Below are positions 1 to 40,493 of a stretch of DNA of 64,000 bases, one piece after another. The notes beneath the pieces were generated by a model. That model ran no database searches. It was given only the letters and a program-made list of their open reading frames with translations, and was not told the origin of the DNA. The DNA lies in the NCBI GenBank assembly GCA_009859145.1, contig VRVR01000008.1, positions 323,693 to 387,692 on the forward strand. The letters are read 5' to 3'. Numbering within the stretch: position 1 is the stretch's first letter; every line of letters begins with the position of its first letter. Origin of the DNA: Andalucia godoyi And28 (lineage: Eukaryota; Protista; Jakobida). The position numbers and the translations under genes were made by a program.

Positions 1-40
<40 letters not shown>

Positions 41-154
41 ACAAGTAGATAAAAATGCGGAATGGCAATAAAAGAAGCTCGTTGAAATCCCTGGTTTTTT
101 CTCCTGGTTCCCAAGGTCAGCCAAATGTTTGGAGAGAGGTTTGGATTGGAGGGT
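1..154. mobile_element. Right arm of a MITE-like TIR element (copy A, cut by the window edge)
   Basis: (GA)18 is followed by sequence matching 38332-38415 and 38570-38606, with about 4 differences. It ends in TTTGGATTGGAGGGT, a one-mismatch version of the right TIR at 38592-38607. It lacks the 154 bp at 38416-38569. Confidence 0.8.
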
Positions 155-6858: not shown

Positions 6859-7284
6859 ATCTTCCTCTTCCCCTTTTTCTTCCCCTTTTTCTTCTCCTTT
6901 TTCTTCCCCTTTTTCTTCCTCTCCTTTTCTAGGGTTTCAAGAAGATAATCCAAAACAGAAGCGAAGCAAACACAAATAGAAAACGAGTTTGGTGAACCAA
7001 TTGGAAAGCCCTTTCTTTTATTATGCATTTTGCCTTTTCTGTTTTGTTTCGTAACCCTACTCTTTCGCCGGGTTCAAGAGCACGCAGCCCTAAATCGTTC
7101 CTGTCCTCATTCCGGACGCATATAACAGTAACGAAACCGGCCTCATTAAAACTCTCTTCTCTCTGTCTCTGTCTCTCTCTCTCTGTCTCTTTTTCTTTTT
7201 CTTTTTCTTTTTCTTTATATTCTTTGTATTATTATTTATTTGCTAATTATTATGATTATTACTAGCGATTGAGGGGAAGAAAAA

Positions 7285-8667
7285 ATGGAAGGATCTGCTC
7301 CTTTAATTCAGTTTGATGGCGTGAAAAACCCAGAGTTTACTCTTGAAAACGGACTTCGAACGCTCGCAAGGCGGTTCCGAAACCAGTATCGACTGGAAAC
7401 GAACCGCCATGATATTTCATATGATTCGCTCTCTCGAGGGCTGATCTATGTGTTTTGCAATCCTCAGTCGAAATTCACGACTTCCGAGTTTTCTGCGATT
7501 CGAGAGTATCTCGCGTCGGGCGGATCGGTGTTTTTCTGTCTTTCTGACAAGGCTACGGAGAAGACAAACACGAATTATCTGACAGAGGAGTTTGGAATTG
7601 CGGCAAACAACGACCAGGTCTTGCGCCAAGTTCCTAAAAAGTCGTATTTCTATCCGCAGGAAGCGCAGATCTCTGCGGGTGTGGTGAACCGAGAGATCAA
7701 TCGAGCGGCGGGATTCAAGGTTTCTTCGTCAACCATGCATGCCAACTCGGCAGATCGGCTTTTCGCGTCGCATGTGGCACATGCAGAAACGTCTCTTTCG
7801 TTTGTGTATCCCTTTGGATGCACGCTTAATGTCCAGAAGCCTGCGATTCCCTTGTTGGCAACCAGTCATGTGTGCTTCCCGCTGAACAGACCCGTGTGTG
7901 CGGTGCACGCTGGGTCCACACCAAAGTCTGGACGACTGTGTGTGCTTGGCTGTGCAAGACTTCTCTCTGATGCGTATGTGGACAGAGAAGACAACATCAA
8001 ATTGCTGGATGTCCTGTTTCGATACTTGAGCAGATCATCGGAGGTTCGTCTGAACGCGATTGACGCAGAGGACCCGGAAGTCAACGATATGAACTACATT
8101 CCAGATATTGGCGCGCTTGCAGAAACAGTGCAGTCGTGTTTGCAAGAATCAGATTCCATCAATCCGGACTTTTCGTCGCTTTTCAAAGATGCGTTGCATC
8201 GTCTGTCTACCGACAATGTGCCAGCCGTTGTGAGTGCCTTCCATCGCCTCGAAGTGGATCACAAGCCGCTTGGTCTGATCCCTCCCGAGTTCGAGACTCC
8301 GCTGCCGCCTTTGCAACCTGCGGTGTTTCCGCCATCCATGAGAGACTTGCCACCACCACCTCTCGATTTGTTCGATTTGGACGAACAGTTTGCTTCTGAG
8401 CGCGTTCGATTGGCGCAACTCACCAACAAGTGCACGGATGAAGATCTTGAATATTATATTCGTGAATGTGGAGAGATTATCGGCGTGGCATCGGAGCTGC
8501 CTGCGGACCAGCGATCTGCAAAACATATTCTGTCTTTTGTGTTGCGACAGATCGTCAACTACAAGAGACTAAACAGCGTCTCCGAAACTGCGCAGCCTCG
8601 AAACAATACGCCAGAGAAGGGATCTTTGTTCGGGACGCAAGGAAATGCAGAGATGCTTTCGTTTTGA
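7285..8667 (+). CDS. IFT52: Intraflagellar transport protein 52, 460 aa
   Basis: N-terminal GIFT-like domain, a proline-rich PPEFETPLPPLQPAVFPP segment, and C-terminal LDLFDLDEQFASERVRLAQLTNKC...DLEYYIRECG. Confidence 0.93.
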   Translation: MEGSAPLIQFDGVKNPEFTLENGLRTLARRFRNQYRLETNRHDISYDSLSRGLIYVFCNPQSKFTTSEFSAIREYLASGGSVFFCLSDKATEKTNTNYLTEEFGIAANNDQVLRQVPKKSYFYPQEAQISAGVVNREINRAAGFKVSSSTMHANSADRLFASHVAHAETSLSFVYPFGCTLNVQKPAIPLLATSHVCFPLNRPVCAVHAGSTPKSGRLCVLGCARLLSDAYVDREDNIKLLDVLFRYLSRSSEVRLNAIDAEDPEVNDMNYIPDIGALAETVQSCLQESDSINPDFSSLFKDALHRLSTDNVPAVVSAFHRLEVDHKPLGLIPPEFETPLPPLQPAVFPPSMRDLPPPPLDLFDLDEQFASERVRLAQLTNKCTDEDLEYYIRECGEIIGVASELPADQRSAKHILSFVLRQIVNYKRLNSVSETAQPRNNTPEKGSLFGTQGNAEMLSF

Positions 8668-8880
8668 AAGAACAGAGCAGCGGCGGCGAATCCACCCGAG
8701 TTCGCTGGGATTTTGGAAGGTGTTTTGGGTTTTGTATAAAGGCACGAACGAAGCTGCAAGTACGCCATTTTCACAGAAATTCGATATGTTTTTAATATCA
8801 TTTCGCATCACATACGATTATTATCATTGGTACATATATACCTTTTCTTTTTGTAATTCTCGTGCCCGTCGATGCCCTTG

Positions 8881-10581
8881 CTACCTGACGGACTTCGAAG
8901 ACACTGGACGTTGAGTGGATGACGATCGCATGCCAGCAACGCTTCGCGGTCTTTGCGTTGCGGTGGGAGACGTTTTTTCCAAGGACATCTTCGTCCCGCT
9001 GGCATGGATGGCAGCAACTGCAGATTCTCTGCTGGATTCCCTCTCGCCACTTGCAAGCATCACCTTTGTGAACATTTTGTTCATTTCTTGTGAAGGGATG
9101 TGAAAGAGGGCCGTCTTTCGCATGGCTTCTTTTAGTTTCTGTGGAGACAAACTTGCTTCCATGTTCGACAGGGGATTCTTAAGGTTTCTAAGCTTCTGCT
9201 CAAACGTCGGTTCTTGATACGCATATTCCTTTTCAATCGAGTTGTGGAGATCACGTTTCGCAGACTGATGTCCTCGGACGGATGCCTGCCTCAGAGAAGA
9301 TGCGCTTGAACGGCGACGCACGTCTAGTGTTGGTACGTTTGCGTTTGCGTTTGCGTTTGAGTTTGCGGCTGGCGCTTGCAGTTCTATGAAGTGACTCGAT
9401 CCTGGGGTGGTGTCCGTCCGTCCGTTCTTGAGCAGGCTCCTTGTTTTCTCTGCTGCCTTGTACCTTGCACTTTGCTTTTGCAGCCTCGCATTGGCAACGG
9501 ACATCCAGGTTTGCGCCTTTGGCTTTAAGTCCAAGTCTTCTCCCCAGCTGGCGCTCAGCGAGTTATGCTGGATTCTTGGAGGGATGATTGGCTGTGCGAA
9601 CTGGATGTCGTCGACGTGAATGATCTTTCCAACCTTGTCCAGAGAATTCTTTGGTGTTATCGATGCGCGCCGAACAAAATTCAGCAGGTCCCTGTTGTTC
9701 TCGATCTTCTTATCCGATTTTGGAGATGTGGCCGCACCGAATTGAGAGTTCAGATCCTGCAAGAAGCTTGATTGTGACGACAGTCGATCTGTCATTGTTT
9801 TGGAGGTTGGAATAGGCGTGGGCTGTACCGATCGAGCAGTCGATAGTTTCGAGCCTCGATCGTCATTCTGCGAGATCAGGTCAGGTATGGAATCTCCCTG
9901 CACGACCAGGTCGTCAAGCACTCCTGGAGCAAAGCCCAGACTTGGAACACGCGATGCTGCTCCAAAAAGAGAATCGATTGCAGTGGATTTTGGATGATAA
10001 GCACCCGGTCTTCGGAAGTTTCTTCTTTCAATGAGACTGGTGATATCCGCATGTCTCGGCTCACTGTGCCAGTCAATTTCTAGCATGATGCTCTTTGCCT
10101 CATGCGGCTGCAGCGGTTGACTCTTCGACTCCACTCGCCTGCTGTCCGCGTAGCTTCCCGCCGCCGATTTCGAGCGCATGGACTCCCAGGCTCGAGCACT
10201 GTTCCGAGACCCAGGACGCAGCTGCGCAGACTCATTTTCCGAAGCCATGAGTTCTAGTCTGTCGAATTCGGGACGAAAAGAAATCACAGTAGATGTCAGC
10301 GAACTGAGAATGTCTTGCGGCGTCGGTTCCCCCAGTTCTTGTGGTTCCTCTGAGGCCTCCACGGCTCTGCGAGAACCTTTTTTGCCTTTTCTTTTCGGCT
10401 TTGACGATGTGGCACTGGTTGACAAGGATGACACCGGGCGAGCCGGCTGATGGTGAGACTGGGCACGACTATCTTCTGAAGGTGGACTGCTGGTCTGCGA
10501 TGGTCCGCTATGGGTCGGATGTGTCTTTCTCTCGAGTTGCGTTCGAACGTCTTCCCACGCTAATTCATGAGTTGAAGCATC
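8881..10581 (-). CDS. Uncharacterised low-complexity Ser/Lys/Arg-rich protein; 5' end unresolved, probably spliced
   Basis: 517-aa ORF from a GTG. The frame stays open upstream to about 10587. Candidate acceptors lie at about 10582 and about 10560, and a GTATGT donor at 10705. Confidence 0.6.
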   Translation of the reverse strand, partial: DASTHELAWEDVRTQLERKTHPTHSGPSQTSSPPSEDSRAQSHHQPARPVSSLSTSATSSKPKRKGKKGSRRAVEASEEPQELGEPTPQDILSSLTSTVISFRPEFDRLELMASENESAQLRPGSRNSARAWESMRSKSAAGSYADSRRVESKSQPLQPHEAKSIMLEIDWHSEPRHADITSLIERRNFRRPGAYHPKSTAIDSLFGAASRVPSLGFAPGVLDDLVVQGDSIPDLISQNDDRGSKLSTARSVQPTPIPTSKTMTDRLSSQSSFLQDLNSQFGAATSPKSDKKIENNRDLLNFVRRASITPKNSLDKVGKIIHVDDIQFAQPIIPPRIQHNSLSASWGEDLDLKPKAQTWMSVANARLQKQSARYKAAEKTRSLLKNGRTDTTPGSSHFIELQAPAANSNANANANVPTLDVRRRSSASSLRQASVRGHQSAKRDLHNSIEKEYAYQEPTFEQKLRNLKNPLSNMEASLSPQKLKEAMRKTALFHIPSQEMNKMFTKVMLASGERESSRESAVAAIHASGTKMSLEKTSPTATQRPRSVAGMRSSSTQRPVSSKSVR

Positions 10582-11110
10582 CTCCAGTCAATCATACACA
10601 TGCATGCAAAAAAGTATAAGTAAAACCATGCTTTGTGCAGGCTGACACCCGTTTTTTGCACCTGGTCTTTGAAGCAAGAATAAGAAAAAGGAAGACATGA
10701 CATACGCGACAGGAAGTCTAGAGCAACTCTCATGGTGGGATAACCCAGGTTTCCCCTGCTTTTGAGAAACAGAATCGTAATGCACGAAGAAAGCTCGATT
10801 TGTGAATACGTACGGGCACACTGATGATGGTGCTACTATTCCTGAAGTACTTTGCATATGCTATTTGGGATGCTTTGTGAGGCTGACGAGACTGATGTGC
10901 AGAGCGTCCCGGTTGGATCGAAACCCCCCGCGTTTGCAACGGCAACAGCTGTACGTTTCGGTCCCGAGTACAACACGTGAATCATGAATTTCTTTCAGCA
11001 TTGGTTTTATTACAGAAGGAAGGCGCTGGGTCGGGCAGGAAAAGAGGTCATATATATACATAAGAATAATAAAATAAAGACAATGTACAGTAAGATGGAG
11101 GAAGGGAAGA

Positions 11111-13897
11111 TTACAAGATGATTTCGCGGGGCTTGGGCTTGTGGAAGAACCGCAATGCTCCTGTAGCGCCCTCCTTGGTGTCAGCAGGTCTATACGGCGC
11201 AGTCCCGCCGTACGGACGGGGCAACCCAAGATCGTCGTCTGGGATATAGGCGTTCGGTCGGGGCTCCGCGGTGGTTCTCGTGATGGTTGCTGGAAGATTT
11301 CGCTCTGCCTCAAGCTGTTTCTTGCGATCCAGCAGCATTTCCTGTCTTCGCAGCCTGTCCGTCATATCACGATAGAAACCATCTTCAGCATCGTCCGTTG
11401 GAGGCTCGCCGATCGCAACCCTCTGTTCGGCGTCTTCGACGGTCTTCTTGACTTCGTCACGCTCAAGCTGGAGCTTCATTGCCGTAGCCTGGACCATGGA
11501 GAGCTCTGCAACGAGCGCCATCATCTTCTTTGTCTTGTCGCGCAGGGCGGCCTGGTATGCGTTGATCTGCTGGGATACGGCAAGAGCAGGCTCTCGAACC
11601 CGCTGTGCGTCCCCACGCAGCTTGTCGATCGCTGTGTTGACTTCGTCCGCAACAAGTTGCTTTTCGAGGAGCTTCTCCTTGGCCGCATGAATTCGTTCTT
11701 CAAGGCGCACCACCTTGGCGGACAGTTTCTCAGGAGGATCGTCATGACCTCCAAGTGCACGCCACCGCGAGGTGTTGGAGGGTGCGTCAAGGGCTTTCGA
11801 GAGATACTCTGACAGGGCGCGCTCCATGAGAAGTTCGTTTTGGAACTGGATAACCTGGTGTCGAAGATCCTCAAACTCGGGCTCTGCACGACGCGTATTC
11901 TCAAGAGCTCGAACAAGATCGCTTGTCTCACGCTGCAGATACTTGAGCTCCTCCTCTCTCCTGCGCAGTGCCATCTCACCTTCGTTCAAAATAGTTTCTT
12001 GGATGTTGTTCTTTTCGTACAAGATGCACAATTCATCATTGCGATCAATGAGAGCAAGACCTGCAAAGTTTCGATCTGCAACAGCACGCTCATAAGACTG
12101 CTTTAGTCGCAGCATATCCTCTTCGGCATTTTCGATCAGGCTGTGAAGCCGTTCAATGTTCGCGAGTTGCTCATCCAACACGGATTTCCGCTGACGATAA
12201 ATGACCAAGAGCTTGTTGGCCTCTGATCGAAGCGTCTCGCGGTTTCCAAACTTTTCCTGCTGATCTCGGCGCTCCTTCGTGAGCAGAGAGTCCTTCGCGG
12301 ACGATTTCCTTCTCAAGACATCCAATTCGTTATCCAGAATACCGTTCTTCTCCTTGATTTCCGCCAGTTTCTGCATGGAAGTCTGGATCATGGTTGAATA
12401 CTTGTTGCGCTCCGTCTTGAGTTTTGTGTACAAATTTTCGACAAACGTGACGCGACCCTTGAGTTCATCTTCCTGGCGCTCCATTTCAGAAATGTGGATC
12501 TGTTTGACCTTCAGCGTGTCGAGCGCCTCTCGCAGTCTGGCCTTTACCTTCGCAGCATCCCGGGACGCACGTTCTCTGATCGCGGAAGCTTTCGTAATGT
12601 CGTTATTGAGTTGTCTTTGCTCATCGACCAGCGTCAGCAAGTCATCTTCCATTTGCTTGAGCTGATCCTTGACGGCCTGGTACTGTCCGATCGAAGTCTT
12701 TTCCACGCCTTCCTGCTTCAAGAAACTGTTAATCATGATGTCCACTTCACGCTTCAAATCTTCCATCTCGCGAGCGTTCTTTTTCCGCAAGTTTTCCAGT
12801 TGTTCCAATTGCCGAGTGGTCAGATCATACTGCGTTGCGAAGTCCGTGTGCTGCTGCTTTGCAATGCCAATCGAGTTCTCCAGCCGTCGAATCGTCTTGA
12901 GCATCGTATCCTTGTCCTTGAGCAACTTGTTCAAGCTGTCTCTCTCGCGGTGAGCTTCTGCATCGAGCGTGTTTTCGCGAAGTTCCAGGTCCATTTGCCC
13001 CGCCACCAGTTCCATCTTGCGCTCCTTTTCAATCTCAATATTCTTCTCGAATTCATCGAGTTGTCGTTGTTTCTGCTCAATCGCAGATCTTTGAGACTCC
13101 AGTCCAATCGATAAATCGTACCATTCTTTCTCGATGCGTTGCTTCGAAGAATCTTGTTCTGCGGACATGCGATCATACTCCTTCCACTTTTCTTCGAGCT
13201 TCTTCAGATCAGAGTCCATGGCTTCGTTAGCCTTGGACGCAACGCTGACCTGTTTTCTCATCTTTTCCGGGTCATTTTCGATTCTTCTCAAGTGCTCCTT
13301 TTCTCGAGCGTAGTCCTCCTTGAGATTCTCAATTTCATGACGAAGTTGCCGAATTCGAAGATCCGAGCTCGACCGTTGCTCATCATATTTCTGATCTTGG
13401 TCGTTCAGCCTCTCAATTTCTTTTTTCAAGTCGTCGATGCCCGATTCCAGCTTTTCAATCACAGGCTTCAGAGCTGCAATGCGCTTATCTTCCTCTTCCT
13501 GGATCTCGCTCTGCATGTTGTCCATTTGTCGCTCAAGTTCTGCCTTTTCAATCGACAAGACCGCTTCTCGTTCCTGACACTCTGCAAACTCCAACTCTGC
13601 CTTTGCCTTGTCGGATCTCAGGCTCTCCATAACTGCATCATCCTCCTTGGCAGATGCGTCGTACCGACCCAGCTTCTCTGCCAAGACATCAAATTCCTGC
13701 TTCAGCGACCGTCCCTTTGCCACAAGCTGAGACTCGTGCTCATACGTCTTGACGACCATTTCTTGCATTTTCTCGTACTTTGAACGCAGCCATTCAGCAC
13801 GCGTAGCATCAATACGACCACAGGAGAGTAGCTCGTCAAGTACGCCTATTGCAACCGAGTTGGACACATCGGCCACAAACTCGTCCGACGTCGACAT
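11111..13897 (-). CDS. CCDC146: Coiled-coil ciliary protein CCDC146/MBO2, about 928 aa
   Basis: Long coiled coil with the diagnostic C-terminus RTTAEPRPNAYIPDDDLGLPRPYG. First plausible ATG (MSTSDEF) is at 13897. Confidence 0.85.
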   Translation of the reverse strand: MSTSDEFVADVSNSVAIGVLDELLSCGRIDATRAEWLRSKYEKMQEMVVKTYEHESQLVAKGRSLKQEFDVLAEKLGRYDASAKEDDAVMESLRSDKAKAELEFAECQEREAVLSIEKAELERQMDNMQSEIQEEEDKRIAALKPVIEKLESGIDDLKKEIERLNDQDQKYDEQRSSSDLRIRQLRHEIENLKEDYAREKEHLRRIENDPEKMRKQVSVASKANEAMDSDLKKLEEKWKEYDRMSAEQDSSKQRIEKEWYDLSIGLESQRSAIEQKQRQLDEFEKNIEIEKERKMELVAGQMDLELRENTLDAEAHRERDSLNKLLKDKDTMLKTIRRLENSIGIAKQQHTDFATQYDLTTRQLEQLENLRKKNAREMEDLKREVDIMINSFLKQEGVEKTSIGQYQAVKDQLKQMEDDLLTLVDEQRQLNNDITKASAIRERASRDAAKVKARLREALDTLKVKQIHISEMERQEDELKGRVTFVENLYTKLKTERNKYSTMIQTSMQKLAEIKEKNGILDNELDVLRRKSSAKDSLLTKERRDQQEKFGNRETLRSEANKLLVIYRQRKSVLDEQLANIERLHSLIENAEEDMLRLKQSYERAVADRNFAGLALIDRNDELCILYEKNNIQETILNEGEMALRRREEELKYLQRETSDLVRALENTRRAEPEFEDLRHQVIQFQNELLMERALSEYLSKALDAPSNTSRWRALGGHDDPPEKLSAKVVRLEERIHAAKEKLLEKQLVADEVNTAIDKLRGDAQRVREPALAVSQQINAYQAALRDKTKKMMALVAELSMVQATAMKLQLERDEVKKTVEDAEQRVAIGEPPTDDAEDGFYRDMTDRLRRQEMLLDRKKQLEAERNLPATITRTTAEPRPNAYIPDDDLGLPRPYGGTAPYRPADTKEGATGALRFFHKPKPREIIL

Positions 13898-35730: not shown

Positions 35731-36387
35731 TCAATCCGGGAGGACGATGACGGAGCATACCGTGTCGCCTTTCAGAAACACCCACGACAGATTCCGTTGT
35801 ATGTTCTTCAGAAGCTTCTTGCCTTCAGGCTGGTGCGGATGCTCCGGTACGTTGTCCGTGTATTGCTGTACGCAGTTTCGAAGAATGAGGTTGCAGTGCT
35901 TGTCGAATGCCTCGAGGTAGCCAACAATGCTCCCAAACAACCTGTCGACCTTGCGAATCTTTACGCAGACCTGCTTTTTGCCGCGAACACACTCTTGCAG
36001 CAGCACGAACGGACCAAGGGCATCTCTTGCTTTCGCCGACTTGTCATGCACCAACTTGCCAAATGAATTCCAGGCCGTGGGCTGATTGCGGAGTCTTTCT
36101 TCTGCTTCCTTTTCTTTCTGAATCCGTCTGCGCGTCTGTTCCTCCTGATACGCCTTTGCATGCTCAACGCGGTTCTGAAACTCCGCCGATTCCAAATATT
36201 CTGTTTTAGCAACAGATGCAGCTCCGTCAATGCGATTCGGGTCACTTGGAGGCAACAGCATGCGACATTTCGACAGGTTGTCCAACGGAGCCACCGCCCG
36301 ATTCGGAACGTGCACTCTCGCCGCATCCGGTTCGCGCAGACACTGCAAAAAGTCACATTCCGAAGACGTCAAATCCAGCTTGTCCAT
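35731..36387 (-). CDS. LSM11: LSM11-like Sm-fold protein, 218 aa
   Basis: N-terminal LDLTSSECDF...PLDNL segment, GPFVLLQECVR...YLEAFDKHCNLIL (Sm1), and VFLKGDTVCSV (Sm2) after a long insert. This is the LSM11 architecture. Confidence 0.7.
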   Translation of the reverse strand: MDKLDLTSSECDFLQCLREPDAARVHVPNRAVAPLDNLSKCRMLLPPSDPNRIDGAASVAKTEYLESAEFQNRVEHAKAYQEEQTRRRIQKEKEAEERLRNQPTAWNSFGKLVHDKSAKARDALGPFVLLQECVRGKKQVCVKIRKVDRLFGSIVGYLEAFDKHCNLILRNCVQQYTDNVPEHPHQPEGKKLLKNIQRNLSWVFLKGDTVCSVIVLPD

Positions 36388-36909
36388 CAGAAAGAACAAA
36401 ACCAAAATAAAATAAAACAAACACAAACAATAAAACAATAAAACAATAAAACAACAACAACAACCCCACTCACTCTCCGTCTTCTTCCGTTCCTCACGGC
36501 CGTCGTCTAGCGTTGAGCGTTCCCTTCTCTTCGTGTTTTCACCAACCAAAAAAATAATAATGAGGACGCTTCCATAAGATTCAATTCAGAAATTCCAGCA
36601 GTTCCTCAAATCGGTCTTCTTTTTCCCCTTTCCGTTTCTCTCTCGTTTCCTTTTCCCTTTTGTCTGTTATCCGCTGTCTGTCGTCCCTTGGATTTTGTTT
36701 GTTGAACCCATTCCCCTTTTCCTTTTTCCCTTTCTCCCGTTTCACCTTGGACTTCGTTGTGTCACATAAAATTTTGAATAAAAGCACTGCTGTGTTCGTA
36801 TTTTGATGTTTCACCGTGTTTATTTGGCACCACATCCTCCTCGCACTTCGCCGCACGTTGTCGGTTTGTCTATTTCGTCTGTTTCATACTTGTACATTTT
36901 CAGAACCCG

Positions 36910-38000
36910 ATGGTGCAGGTGGTGAAAGCTGCGCTCCGAGAGCGGCTGCGCCATCCCGATCTGCACGATGCCCTCCTGAGTTGGGTGAGCGATTTGCCGT
37001 TCATCACGTGGCGCGGCGCACTCCTGCTAAACCACTACCTCGCCCTTGTGTTGGAGAATGACCTGCCCTTTCCCGATTTCAAGGATTCGTTCTTGATGAA
37101 TGCATTTACGTTTCCGGATGGCCGCATCATTGTTACTTCTTCCGAGTCCGTCCTTGCACTCACCGCCTTTGCGGAGGAGCATTGGGACAACCATCCGCGG
37201 CTGCAGGGAGTCGGGTACAGAGGGGAGTACTGCCAAGCGTCGCGGTATCTTGCGAGAGAATGCCAAACCAACATGGCGAACGGCTTCAAGTTCGGTCTTG
37301 AGGCGAAGCTGCGTCGCCATGTCTTCGCATCCATCGCATCCATTCCCGCAGACGGCGTGCGGCTGACGACGAGATGGTCTCCAGAGAGCCAAACCCCAGG
37401 AGAAGGCGCGGAGCAGCGGGGCGCGAGGATCAGCAGCAGCAGCCGCGTCAGGTGCCGGCGGGCATGACGCTTGTCGGGATCGACCCAGGGCGCGCAAACA
37501 TCTTGACCGCGTTCGACGGGACTGCCGTGCGCAGCGAGATGCGCAACCAGTGGTATCATGCCACTGGTGCAAATGCGGAGCGCAAGTGGATGGAGCAACG
37601 CAACGGTCGTGTTTGCGAGATTCTGGATGAGTTGTCGGCGCTGCTGCGGATCAGTCAAGAGGCCGACTGGCTTCCGCATCTTCATTTCTACAGGACGCAT
37701 GTCAATGCCCTTTGGAGTCATTTCACGAACCACCAGGGGCTGAGACACTGCGCCACAGTGAACTGTCCATCTGACCGCCGGTGCGTGGGCCGCGATGCCA
37801 ACGCCACGATGAACATTCGTCAGTGCTGGCTCAGCCGACCGCGGTTCTTGTGTCGGAATCCACGCGGTATTCCCAGTGCAAGCGAGCTGGAGTCCTCGCG
37901 TGAGGCACTCATGAAGATTGAACACGTCTGGTTCTGCCGGACATTTCACGCCTCCCGTTCCAACTTCCGACTACGACAGGTGGAATCGAAACTGCTGTAG
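36910..38000 (+). pseudogene. Degenerate Fanzor1 (TnpB-derived RNA-guided endonuclease), frameshifted and internally deleted
   Basis: ORF 36910- shows the Fanzor1-type N-terminus (VVKAAL...RGALLLNHYL...LPFPDF, YLARECQTNMAN) and SIPADGV (the TDGV motif). The frame shifts at 37372-37373. The second frame has RuvC-I LVGIDPGRANI (Asp 37482), Zn knuckle GLRHCATVNC, RuvC-III RDANATMNI (Asp 37794) and terminal RPRFLCR. RuvC-II is absent. Confidence 0.88.
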
Positions 38001-38079: not shown

Positions 38080-38607
38080 AACCCTCCAACCCAAATATCT
38101 GGTGGACGGCTGTGAATGTATATCATTGGATAGTATGGCTGAGTTGGCAGCCGTCGACATTACCGTTGAATGAAGGCCGGCCATTTTCCCCCTTGCAGAA
38201 TGCTGTTACCAGTGGCGGCAGGTCGAGGCCCAATGCGACACTGTCAGCCGATTCCTTGTAATCGATGATTTCTCCGCCACGGGGCCTCTCTCTCTCTCTC
38301 TCTCTCTCTGAGAGAGAGAGAGAGAGAGAGAAAGAACAAGTAGATAAAAAAATGCGGAATGACAATAAAAGAAGCTCGTTGAAATCCCTGGTTTTTTCTC
38401 CTGGTTCCCAAGGTCCATTTGGTTCTAACGAATGCACTCATTGATCAGTTCGCGAGCTCTGAACGAAACTATAATAGGCTGTTTCCGTTTTGGGGTGCGC
38501 ATGGGCGCTGATGCTGACTGTAAACGTCAACTTTTTACCCCAAATAGTCTGTCTGAGGCGCAGCATGCGAGCCAAATGTTTTGGAGAGAGGTTTGGGTTG
38601 GAGGGTT
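38080..38607. mobile_element. Non-autonomous TIR element (MITE-like), 528 bp (copy B)
   Basis: Perfect 16-bp inverted repeats AACCCTCCAACCCAAA (38080-38095) and TTTGGGTTGGAGGGTT (38592-38607). A second copy lies at 1-154. No convincing ORF and no clear TSD. Confidence 0.82.
38286..38331. repeat. Palindromic microsatellite (CT)12(GA)11
   Basis: Directly visible inside the TIR element and self-complementary. Confidence 0.95.
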
Positions 38608-38683: not shown

Positions 38684-40087
38684 ATGCGGTTCCAGGTAGC
38701 TTTGTGTGTGCTTCCGCTTCTGTTCTCCCTTGTTCTCAGTGCACCGGCGGCATCACATGCGCTCCCAAGGCTGCAAGTCTCGGGCGACTTGGTGCAGAAA
38801 GTTGTGGTTCGGACGATCGAGGCGTCGAATTCACTGATCCGGTCATCGGTACGCATCAAGTTTGAGAACAAAGGATCATCGACTGCGACTGAATTTGCGT
38901 TTATTCTCCCCAATGACCAAGCTTCCCGACTTGCGCTTCTCGAGCCGTCGCAGAAAAAGACAGTTCTGCCTGTTTCTGGACCGTTTTCCATCGATTTGCA
39001 GCCGGATTTTGTCGCATTTAAAGTTTCCGGGATCAAGATCAGCCCCTCCGAGACACAGGAGGTGACTGTGAAGCTGTCTTTCACGGGCCGTCTTCGCCCT
39101 GAGCCAGAATTGACTCCGCAAGAGTCGCTGCAGTACGTCATCTTGTCGGATTCGCATCTTGTTGCATCGCCGTACAAGACGGAAAAGCAGTCCACGCGCA
39201 TTAAGCTGGGTACAGATCGCGTTGAGTCGTATTCTGAGCTGAAGCCAATGTCCTTTGCGGACCGCGAGTTGTCGCTTGGACCATATGCGGATGTTGCGCC
39301 GTTCTCGGTCTCGTCGCTGCAAGTCCATTATGCAATGCAGGCAGGTCTTGTGGACATTGAAGAGCTTGTGAGGACTGTCGAAGTGTCGCATTGGGGATAC
39401 GTTTCTTTCACAGACGACTACAGAGTCCGCAACAATGGAGCCGGTCTCAAGGGCGAGTTTTCCCGACTGGACTATGTGAGAAAGCAAGCATTTGGAAACT
39501 CGATTGCTTCGATGGATGTGAACATTCCGTATTCTGCTGTTGACATGTACTATCGCGACGAAATCGGAAACATCTCGACATCCAACTTGTTCCGCTACGA
39601 CGACCACATCCATGCGCAGCTGATGCCGCGATTTCCGCTGTTTGGACACTGGCAAACGGTGTTTACGTTCGGCCATGCGGTGCCGCTCAATGTCCTTGGC
39701 TCATACACGGAGTCCGGAAAGAGACAGGTGGTGTTCTCGCTGTGGCCCGGCATGGAAAATGTGGGGCTGAAGAAAATGACGCTTAAGATCATGCTTCCAG
39801 AAGGAGCAACGGGCATTTCGACCATGGTTCCTTACTCGACCTATAAGGATGTGGATATCCGACAAGAGTCTGTTGCAACATATCTTGATGTCGGTGCCGG
39901 GAGACCAACGGTGGTTATCACGATTGAGAGTCTGACTCCGGAAATGGATTCTCTCGTACAGATCACGTACGACTTTGCTGCAATCAGCATGTTGAGAGAA
40001 CCGTTGCTGCTGATCTTTGCATTTTTTGTCCTTCTCGCAGTAGGAATCTGCGGTTCGCGACTGTCTCTCAAGATCAAGAATGATTAA
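38684..40087 (+). CDS. RPN1: Oligosaccharyltransferase subunit ribophorin I (RPN1/OST1), 467 aa
   Basis: Signal peptide, VEVSHWG, YYRDEIGNISTS, PRFPLFGHW and a C-terminal TM helix. Short form lacking the cytosolic domain. Confidence 0.93.
   Translation: MRFQVALCVLPLLFSLVLSAPAASHALPRLQVSGDLVQKVVVRTIEASNSLIRSSVRIKFENKGSSTATEFAFILPNDQASRLALLEPSQKKTVLPVSGPFSIDLQPDFVAFKVSGIKISPSETQEVTVKLSFTGRLRPEPELTPQESLQYVILSDSHLVASPYKTEKQSTRIKLGTDRVESYSELKPMSFADRELSLGPYADVAPFSVSSLQVHYAMQAGLVDIEELVRTVEVSHWGYVSFTDDYRVRNNGAGLKGEFSRLDYVRKQAFGNSIASMDVNIPYSAVDMYYRDEIGNISTSNLFRYDDHIHAQLMPRFPLFGHWQTVFTFGHAVPLNVLGSYTESGKRQVVFSLWPGMENVGLKKMTLKIMLPEGATGISTMVPYSTYKDVDIRQESVATYLDVGAGRPTVVITIESLTPEMDSLVQITYDFAAISMLREPLLLIFAFFVLLAVGICGSRLSLKIKND

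Positions 40088-40457: not shown

Positions 40458-40493
<36 letters not shown>

Follow-up and report, generated by a model that had tools for sequence, protein, structure and literature searches.

A probable Fanzor1 pseudogene and its degenerate relatives in the nuclear genome of the jakobid Andalucia godoyi

A 64-kb stretch of nuclear DNA from the jakobid Andalucia godoyi (here called the window, whose positions serve as coordinates unless another sequence is named) contains two open reading frames (ORFs), ORF1 and ORF2, which lie in adjacent frames with an overlap of 94 nt. The region 36910-37949 (+) is in all likelihood a non-functional remnant (pseudogene) of a gene for Fanzor1, which in its intact form is an ωRNA-guided RuvC endonuclease that depends on a target-adjacent motif (TAM) and rides in a transposon (PMC10432273, PMC3627910, PMC10711439). 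Fanzor1 proteins are eukaryotic, derive from TnpB and are related to CRISPR-Cas12. An earlier reading of this DNA from its letters alone (the sequence-only reading) had described the two ORFs and assigned them to Fanzor1; both are present in adjacent frames, and profile and structure comparisons lead to Fanzor1 only.

Reading frames at the locus and their route to Fanzor1

The remnant stands alone in an unusually long spacer of ~2.1 kb between an LSM-domain gene and the gene for ribophorin I. ORF1 is present in EukProt as an exact 185-aa protein, that is, as an annotated gene model, and so is the ribophorin I neighbour (exact over 467 aa), while the close homologues of the remnant all bear ANDGO_ or Andalucia godoyi names. 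The window has a GC content of about 50% and is densely filled with long, intron-free genes; the genome as a whole has been described as compact, about 20 Mb in size and nearly intron-free (PMC7050145).

Pfam gave no match for ORF1, ORF2 or their joined product, phmmer found none for the window ORFs in the PDB, and the NCBIfam model guided_TnpB (NF040570) scored 14.7 bits against a cut-off of 100, over 32 residues of the RDANA region (profile positions 357-388 of 389). A word-indexed search with the joined protein returned two A. godoyi fragments only, P0001 and P0002 (Table 1). When a HMMER profile made from these two fragments and ORF2 was run against 1.84e9 representative proteins, 16 matches were obtained at E<=1e-3, including the A. 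godoyi fragments P0005 and P0006 and an intact protein of 687 aa, P0007 (E=7.5e-22). The other matches are proteins of 360-1366 aa from metagenomes, a transcriptome and the aphelid Amoeboaphelidium, and five of the relatives (P0008, P0009, P0010, P0014 and P0016) pass the Pfam gathering cut-off for the Cas12f1-like TNB (OrfB zinc-ribbon) domain, PF07282. The largest, P0017 from Amoeboaphelidium occidentale (KAI3659768.1, 1366 aa), carries two sets of Fanzor motifs (SDGV and TDGV; GIDPGK and GLDPGR) and looks like a gene model made of two Fanzor1 genes, tandem or fused.

P0007 is encoded by an uninterrupted Fanzor1 gene of 687 codons (L001 2173-4236; Logan contig SRR12487036_21605) that has all catalytic and zinc-finger motifs, adjoins a SPRY-domain gene and lies in DNA with a GC content of about 54%. 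It is the nearest intact relative of the A. godoyi fragments, with 33-60% identity by segment; a word-indexed search with P0007 returned P0007 itself only. Full-length relatives were combined into a 12-member alignment and profile (A2), in which the D-P-G-R of RuvC-I, one Glu, a Cys of the second zinc knuckle, the R-D-x-N...N-I of RuvC-III and a C-terminal Pro are invariant. In a separate alignment, A1, the middle segments of P0002 and P0001 are non-homologous, as P0006/L002 revealed, and those columns were left uninterpreted.

Both window frames align with this family. By hhalign, residues 3-139 of ORF1 match family positions 20-154 (P0007 38-176; E=1.3e-10, probability 96.9%), which bears out the Fanzor1-like N-terminus described in the sequence-only reading, and the ORF2 frame matches family positions 344-590 (E=3.3e-25). 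By tblastn, P0007 meets the window in three collinear pieces, residues 40-192 (33% identity, E=4e-23), 343-500 (29%, E=1e-18) and 608-654 (60%, E=7e-13). The family, in turn, leads to Fanzor1. At E<=1, the A2 profile found only SpuFz1 (8GKH and others, 1.8e-26) and GtFz1 (9CER, 1.9e-12) in the PDB, with none of the chains of TnpB, Fanzor2 or Cas12. An AlphaFold2 model of P0007 (predicted template-modelling score (pTM) 0.58; predicted local distance difference test (pLDDT) of about 80 in the RuvC core) gave the same answer when compared with the PDB by Foldseek: the top seven matches are all Fanzor1 (SpuFz1, GtFz1 and PpFz1; E 1e-10 to 1e-7; ~680-800 aligned columns; TM 0.43-0.52). ApmFz2, a Fanzor2 (9B0L), follows at E=9e-4 over 265 columns, and TnpB and Cas12f at E of about 3e-3 over ~260 columns, these being confined to the RuvC core. 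The small profile of A. godoyi fragments has GtFz1 as its top PDB match, at E=0.21 and so not significant alone, in an alignment that pairs F....TDGV.(I/V)SF, a basic linker and G.DPG.

The Fanzor1 membership of the window is thus transitive, running from the window ORFs to the A2 family and from there to SpuFz1 and GtFz1. A profile search of the frameshift-corrected product, which the sequence-only reading had put forward as a check on its assignment, was not significant in Pfam and NCBIfam; the two ORF frames, taken singly, reached high significance by way of the intermediate family, and no better match to another RNase H-fold transposase emerged.

An origin outside eukaryotic Fanzor1, either from a prokaryotic TnpB (by recent transfer from food bacteria, or as contamination) or from a giant-virus Fanzor2, has some circumstantial appeal, as the sole direct curated match is the sub-threshold TnpB model, A. 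godoyi is a bacterivore that is cultured with bacteria (PMC7050145), and the other Discoba Fanzor named by Saito et al. 2023 is the Fanzor2 of Naegleria lovaniensis. However, the locus sits on the same contig among eukaryotic host genes, the family profile retrieves neither TnpB nor Fanzor2 at E<=1 although both are in the PDB, the structural match to these proteins spans only ~260 columns, versus ~680-800 for Fanzor1, and the N-terminal region homologous to ORF1 is collinear with the N-terminal regions of SpuFz1 and GtFz1. Contamination and origins from prokaryotic TnpB or Fanzor2 were rejected on this host-gene setting and on the profile and fold results, and we regard them as extremely improbable. 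The remaining large ORFs of the window are host genes, encoding a mitochondrial carrier, a class I tRNA synthetase, IFT52, CFAP58, WD40, RhoGAP, CHD-type SNF2, ARM-repeat and LRR proteins, an ALO oxidase, a Dabb protein and a RuvB-like TIP49; no transposase occurs among the large ORFs of the 64 kb, and no second Fanzor piece was found elsewhere in them.

Retained and lost parts of the gene

The window copy keeps only about half of the protein, namely ~140 N-terminal residues, a linker, RuvC-I with the helices that follow it, the second zinc knuckle and RuvC-III (Table 1). The motifs listed in the sequence-only reading, GIDPGR, GLRHCATVNC, RDANA and RPRFLCR, were all found in the order it gave. 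The linker takes the collinear place of the Lys/Arg-rich linkers of P0007 (residues 343-402) and GtFz1, and beyond 37326 ORF1 consists of out-of-frame sequence up to its stop at 37465-37467. Four other family motifs, [TS]DG[VTI], AYGD, DE[FY]x[ST][ST] and the first CxxC, are missing from all three forward frames of the remnant in the motif table. An antisense ORF of 304 aa (37035-37949, -) spans nearly the whole remnant; nothing was found in its support, and it is probably a by-product of GC-rich, coding-derived sequence.

The losses centre on two internal deletions, at about 37327-37358 and about 37735, which tblastn, the paralogous locus L002 and hhalign place near the sites proposed in the sequence-only reading. 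The first zone has removed about 160 residues of the recognition and wedge (REC/WED) region, with P0007 residues ~185-342 lacking a counterpart by tblastn, and is composite. Its older component, at ~37327-37343, fuses ~residue 178 of P0007 out of frame to ~residue 314, just before the TDGV strand. The models P0001 and P0002 start with MSSH(P/S)FPQTAKTDGV.VSF, in a frame that is continuous with RuvC-I, and their MSSHP start is the +1-frame reading of HVFAS in ORF1; the window equivalent reads MSSHPSHPFPQTACG followed by a stop in frame 2 and ...RRHVFASIASIPADGV, the end of ORF1, in frame 1. As both of these paralogue models open with that alternate-frame reading, this old junction is common to at least three copies (window, P0001 and P0002). 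The window has since diverged from them at the same place: across its 9-nt tandem duplication, frame 2 gives MSSHPSHPFPQ in the window versus MSSHPFPQ in P0001 and P0002.

The younger component is a deletion of 59 nt. By tblastn, residues 3-10 of P0001 lie at 37334-37357 (frame 2) and residues 31-209 at 37359-37895 (frame 3), and the 20 intervening P0001 codons (KTDGVLVSFGPEYETMCRPR) are represented by 1 nt in the window; a window-specific deletion of 59 nt must therefore have occurred between 37357 and 37359 (at 37358), and it removed the TDGV strand. The sequence-only reading had joined the two ORFs across a simple 1-nt slip at 37372-37373. The break in frame is real, but in place of the slip there is the old junction compounded by the 59-nt deletion. 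The same reading had also taken PADGV for a TDGV-like motif, an identification that was rejected, since PADGV is an ORF1-frame reading across the deletion scar and the family TDGV strand belongs to the ORF2 frame. The WED-strand TDG(V), with D321 and G322 nearly invariant in the family, is kept in P0001 and P0002 (KTDGV.VSF) and deleted in the window.

For the second deletion the proof is in the DNA itself, because L002 retains the missing segment. Window 37540-37736 corresponds to L002 10017-10213 (86% identity) and window 37733-37918 to L002 10529-10713 (91%), and the 315 nt between them (L002 10214-10528) are missing from the window. In L002 these encode the ...RRFRGRVKKQQ... helix, the AYGDTSF strand and, past a frameshift, IDEYCTTKKCC, which holds the RuvC-II Glu and the first knuckle. 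The hhalign alignment of the ORF2 frame shows the same loss as a 107-column gap over AYGaAkf...idEfrTtkmc and the zinc-finger spacer, and P0007 residues ~501-607 likewise have no counterpart in the window. P0001 has an identical junction (HFTNHQ|GLRHC). Near the 3' end, a 1-nt indel changes the reading of the tail: P0001 and L002 end in ...ELESRVG(H/R)(S/P), and the window reads ELESSREALMK... and continues to a stop at 37998-38000. As the DNA common to L002 stops at 37949, the last 50 nt of ORF2 are flanking DNA.

What has been lost is decisive for function. The relocated RuvC-II Glu, within the motif DE[FY]x[ST][ST] and six residues before the first CxxC, falls within the 315-nt deletion and is kept in P0007 (VDEFRSTMLCCDC) and L002 (IDEYCTT), while the C4 zinc finger/TNB domain (PF07282) is incomplete, with the second knuckle, C-ATVN-C, as its only trace and Pfam silent. 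Bao & Jurka 2013 described the Fanzor1 motif as D-X(125,275)-[TS]-[TS]-X-X-[C4 zinc finger]-X(5,50)-RD (PMC3627910). P0007 fits it (D406...S571-T572-ML-CCDC...CKTANC...RD), and the window does not, its RuvC-I Asp lying 104 residues from the RD Asp with no [TS][TS]-xx-C4 between them. Judged from its sequence, the window copy cannot form an active nuclease, because the catalytic Glu (equivalent to E541 of SpuFz1) is gone together with most of REC/WED and half of the zinc finger, and what remains is split over three frames; the loss of the RuvC-II Glu and the first knuckle bears out the sequence-only reading, which had called the copy nuclease-dead.

Were the frameshifts sequencing or assembly errors, the locus would be less damaged than it appears. 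The assembly was indeed built from 454 reads and polished with Illumina (PMC7050145), and the 1-nt indel at 37894 falls within a short stretch of C. Deletions of 315 nt, 59 nt and ~400 nt are nevertheless beyond homopolymer error, two of them recur in independent paralogues, and the catalytic Glu and first CxxC are still missing with all frames repaired, so the chance that errors explain the damage is close to negligible.

Table 1 Features of the Fanzor1 remnant and its neighbours in the window, and of the other A. godoyi copies
Feature	Position	Strand	Basis or remark
ORF1	36910-37467	+	185 aa
ORF2	37374-38000	+	208 aa
N-terminal (REC/WED-side) Fanzor1 coding part	36910-37326	+	ORF1 frame; hhalign and tblastn
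9-nt tandem duplication, window-specific (TCGCATCCA, twice)	37325-37342	+	sequence read directly, at old junction
Deletion zone 1 (old out-of-frame junction and 59-nt window-specific deletion)	37327-37358	+	tblastn against P0001 and P0007
WED-to-RuvC-I linker, basic and Gln-rich (RRRAADDEMVSREPNPRRRRG...QQQQPRQVPAGMTLV)	37359-37475	+	ORF2 frame
RuvC-I GIDPGR, catalytic Asp 37482-37484	37476-37493	+	aligned to invariant D406-P407-G408-R409 (12-member family alignment)
Helical segment after RuvC-I (QWYHATG...LHFYRTHVNALWSHFTNH)	37494-37735	+	hhalign to family columns 344-~445; 86% DNA identity to L002 10017-10213
Deletion junction 2, 315 nt (105 codons) missing	37733-37737	+	DNA alignment to L002
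Second zinc knuckle GLRHCATVNC	37737-37766	+	aligned to invariant C617
RuvC-III RDANA, Asp 37794-37796	37791-37805	+	aligned to invariant R632, D633, N635, N639, I640
C-terminal RPRFLCR	37838-37858	+	aligned to invariant P648
1-nt indel, extra C versus L002	37894-37895	+	GAGTCCTCG versus GAGT-CTCG; short C run
Last block common to L002 (GTCTGGTTCTGCCGGACATTTCA, 23/23 identical)	37926-37948	+	blastn, MAFFT
LSM-domain gene	35731-36549	-	upstream neighbour of remnant
Ribophorin I	38684-40087	+	downstream neighbour of remnant
P0001 (ANDGO_03127)			both junctions in common with window; TDGV kept
P0002 (ANDGO_05534)			first junction in common; different internal losses (protein model, possible predicted splicing)
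P0005 (ANDGO_02339)			first junction in common; different internal losses (protein model, possible predicted splicing)
P0006 (ANDGO_04702, KAF0852141.1)			locus L002, contig VRVR01000063.1, assembly GCA_009859145.1
L002 neighbours	8488-9435, 9706-10023, 10795-11475	+, -, -	PAS/cyclase pieces and small RING-finger ORF

Degenerate copies and the history of the family

At least five copies of the family exist in A. godoyi (window, P0001, P0002, P0005 and P0006/L002), and all are degenerate, each differently. The L002 copy is truncated at its 5' end at the equivalent of window 37540 and is frameshifted, and it retains the segment deleted in the window, with AYGDTSF in one frame and IDEYCTT...GLRHCATVNC...RDANA in another. 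Its gene model (L002 10001-10516) is called 'putative mitochondrial protein' in NCBI, UniRef and EukProt, a name that is very likely an annotation artefact; the parts of the A. godoyi genome-paper supplements that were available do not list ANDGO_04702 (PMC7050145). The L002 remnant lies between two pieces of PAS/adenylate-guanylate-cyclase genes in opposite orientations, of which the left one stops 44 residues into the cyclase domain, and a small RING-finger ORF adjoins its truncated 5' end; these surroundings suggest that the DNA around the insertion was locally rearranged or duplicated in inverted orientation.

Divergence between the window and L002 carries a trace of past selection. Over 345 aligned coding nt there are 17.5 synonymous and 18.5 non-synonymous differences (dS 0.27, dN 0.07, dN/dS 0.27), against a neutral expectation of 78% non-synonymous changes (binomial p 2e-4 to 8e-4). 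Much of this divergence therefore arose under purifying selection, that is, in once-active lineages, and the ratio of ~0.27 (equivalently Ka/Ks) points to a Fanzor1 family that was once active in the A. godoyi lineage. The deletions also bear on the order of events. Since the window, P0001 and P0002 have one out-of-frame junction in common, the first deletion would be older than the copying that gave rise to these three, and the second is common to the window and P0001 only. From these nested, shared junctions we infer that already-defective elements were copied, perhaps mobilised in trans or carried along in segmental duplications.

The constraint seen in the coding sequence might instead mean that the fragments were domesticated, with nuclease-dead products of about 130-215 aa being expressed and kept for a host function such as nucleic-acid binding. 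This would suit the existence of annotated gene models for ORF1 and for four paralogous fragments, one of them under the mitochondrial name, as well as the Ka/Ks of 0.27 between the window and L002. Yet low Ka/Ks is also expected for copies of different once-active master elements, and the truncations, deletions and frameshifts differ per copy, so that the copies keep no product in common. ORF1 does not join ORF2 in frame, and a 1-nt indel sets the C-terminal tails of copies apart. In addition, the short forms have no homologue outside A. godoyi among the representative proteins searched. Domestication is accordingly a highly unlikely account of the fragments, and decay of a formerly active Fanzor1 family is preferred.

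The sequence-only reading had closed with the suggestion that an intact copy may exist elsewhere in this genome. What was seen does not support it: the four other annotated A. godoyi copies are all fragments, and among 1.84 billion representative proteins an exhaustive HMMER search met no close copy that is intact, returning only the 687-aa relative P0007. The published assembly deliberately leaves out subtelomeric scaffolds rich in transposon- and viral-like sequence (PMC7050145). It is conceivable, if rather doubtful, that A. godoyi harbours, or very recently harboured, an active and divergent Fanzor1 subclade resembling P0007, for example on those omitted scaffolds, and that the copies with nested junctions are derivatives mobilised in trans. 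If such a lineage exists, Jakobida would have its first Fanzor1 system, and compact RNA-guided nucleases of eukaryotes could be drawn from a new source.

Element limits, significance and comparison with known systems

The 3' limit of the repeat can be set by comparison with L002, to which similarity ends after 37949. The terminal block 37926-37949 is a candidate remnant of the right end of the element or of the ωRNA scaffold. A small hairpin is present in it, but shuffled sequences fold as well as the region does (z=0.01), and no covariation is seen, with two sequences only to compare; Rfam placed no family at the remnant and gave only low-complexity hairpin matches, and no terminal inverted repeats were found around it. 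An imperfect 15-nt direct repeat (87%) brackets the remnant at 36734-36748 and 37952-37966 (CTCCCGTTTCACCTT and CTCCCGTTCCAACTT), its second copy beginning 3 nt past the last base common to L002, and could be either a target-site duplication or a chance match in a pyrimidine-rich spacer.

A separate repeat lies 130 nt downstream of the remnant, which it does not enclose. This 528-bp sequence (38080-38607) resembles a miniature inverted-repeat transposable element (MITE): its terminal inverted repeats are perfect over 16 nt (AACCCTCCAACCCAAA), and at its centre lies a (CT)n(GA)n palindrome (38286-38334), on which Rfam gave sub-threshold, low-complexity miRNA-like matches. A 21-nt inverted pair downstream was considered as the ends of the Fanzor element and rejected, as it belongs to this MITE-like element, which is missing from L001 and L002. 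A second, internally deleted copy occupies window positions 15-154, where 15-118 corresponds to 38310-38415 (97%) and 119-154 to 38570-38606 (95%). More (CT)n/(GA)n tracts occur in spacers at 1-40, 7157-7196 and 40459-40490, and appear to be a recurrent intergenic feature of the A. godoyi genome.

Several points weigh against reading the locus as a Fanzor1 pseudogene. None of the direct searches of curated libraries (Pfam, NCBIfam and phmmer against the PDB) was significant for the window ORFs, and the assignment is, at the level of sequence, a two-step chain through uncharacterised intermediates, both steps of which are highly significant. The argument from shared junctions in P0001 and P0002 rests on protein models that may include predicted splicing. 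Neither terminal inverted repeats, a target-site duplication nor an ωRNA is demonstrable, and the 5' boundary of the element is undefined. Finally, ORF1 is an annotated gene, and a Ka/Ks below 1 could also be explained by residual constraint on the fragments. With these points weighed, a Fanzor1 pseudogene is still the strongly favoured reading.

A literature search found no paper pairing Fanzor with Andalucia, and neither Andalucia nor jakobids are mentioned in the text of the Fanzor survey papers or in the supplements that were available for part of them, the sole Discoba Fanzor named there being the Fanzor2 of Naegleria; Fanzor1 has apparently not been reported from jakobids before. The remnant extends the host range of Fanzor1 to this deep-branching group of Discoba and reveals a previously unrecognised, small repeat family in a very compact 20-Mb genome, whose members are now called 'hypothetical' or, once, 'putative mitochondrial' and whose annotation should be corrected. 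The Ka/Ks value and nested deletions together depict a family that was active and was then copied after damage, which bears on how Fanzors spread and die in small protist genomes. As a dead copy of a widely distributed element, the locus has no direct use as an editor, and practical value depends on an intact relative, for which P0007 is a candidate.

The intact ancestor of the remnant, of about 640-690 aa, would be expected to have acted like SpuFz1 and GtFz1, with a WED/REC lobe holding an ωRNA, itself a transcript of the element's 3' end, and a RuvC site cutting TAM-flanked DNA complementary to the guide. The active site would have consisted of two Asp residues, those of GxDPG and RDxNA, and of the relocated Glu, which lies in DE[FY]x[ST][ST] just ahead of the zinc finger, a rearranged type of RuvC-II Glu that has been described by Yoon et al. 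2023 (PMC10711439).

Among known systems, TnpB (ISDra2; 8H1J, 8EXA) and Cas12f resemble the family in their RuvC/TNB core, and TnpB in the weak NF040570 match over RuvC-III, but they give no profile match at E<=1 and have a different N-terminal half, and the RuvC-II Glu is placed otherwise in canonical TnpB. NlovFz2 of Naegleria lovaniensis is likewise a Discoba Fanzor of the TnpB/Fanzor superfamily; it is, however, a Fanzor2 of the short, IS607-TnpB-like form, whereas the jakobid family is Fanzor1 by profile and fold. GtFz1 of Guillardia theta (9CER) is the second-best profile match and a full-length Foldseek match (6e-9), as is PpFz1 of Parasitella parasitica (9CF0; 6e-8), but both of these proteins are intact and biochemically active, with known ωRNAs.

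The closest relative of known structure is SpuFz1 of Spizellomyces punctatus (8GKH, 9CEU-9CEZ), which gives the best profile match and the best Foldseek match of the family (1.2e-10, ~686 columns). The two have in common an N-terminal helical region with Y..TN, a TDG strand, RuvC-I of the form G/A-x-DPG, DE[FY]xTS followed by CxxC, a CxxxxC knuckle, the RDxN of RuvC-III and a C-terminal RP..(L/F).R; the second knuckle is C-TNPN-C in SpuFz1 versus C-ATVN-C in the window. SpuFz1 differs in having only ~16% identity to P0007, and in the window copy about half of the protein is gone, and with it the catalytic Glu, which in SpuFz1 is E541 (PMC10432273). The Spu-1 element is defined by 30-nt inverted repeats and an ωRNA (PMC10432273), unlike the window remnant, at which such features were not found.

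S. punctatus has many Fanzor genes that are only partial, and many 'ghost' elements that lack the ORF (Saito et al. 2023, PMC10432273), and the A. godoyi family, with its five or more fragmentary copies, resembles them as a set of degenerate Fanzor1 copies dispersed in a genome. It differs in that no intact copy and no flanking inverted repeats were seen and in that its copies have nested deletion junctions. Fanzor1-derived pseudogenes are thus known already; what is new here is the jakobid host, the small, decayed repeat family with its corrected annotations, and the divergent, intact P0007.

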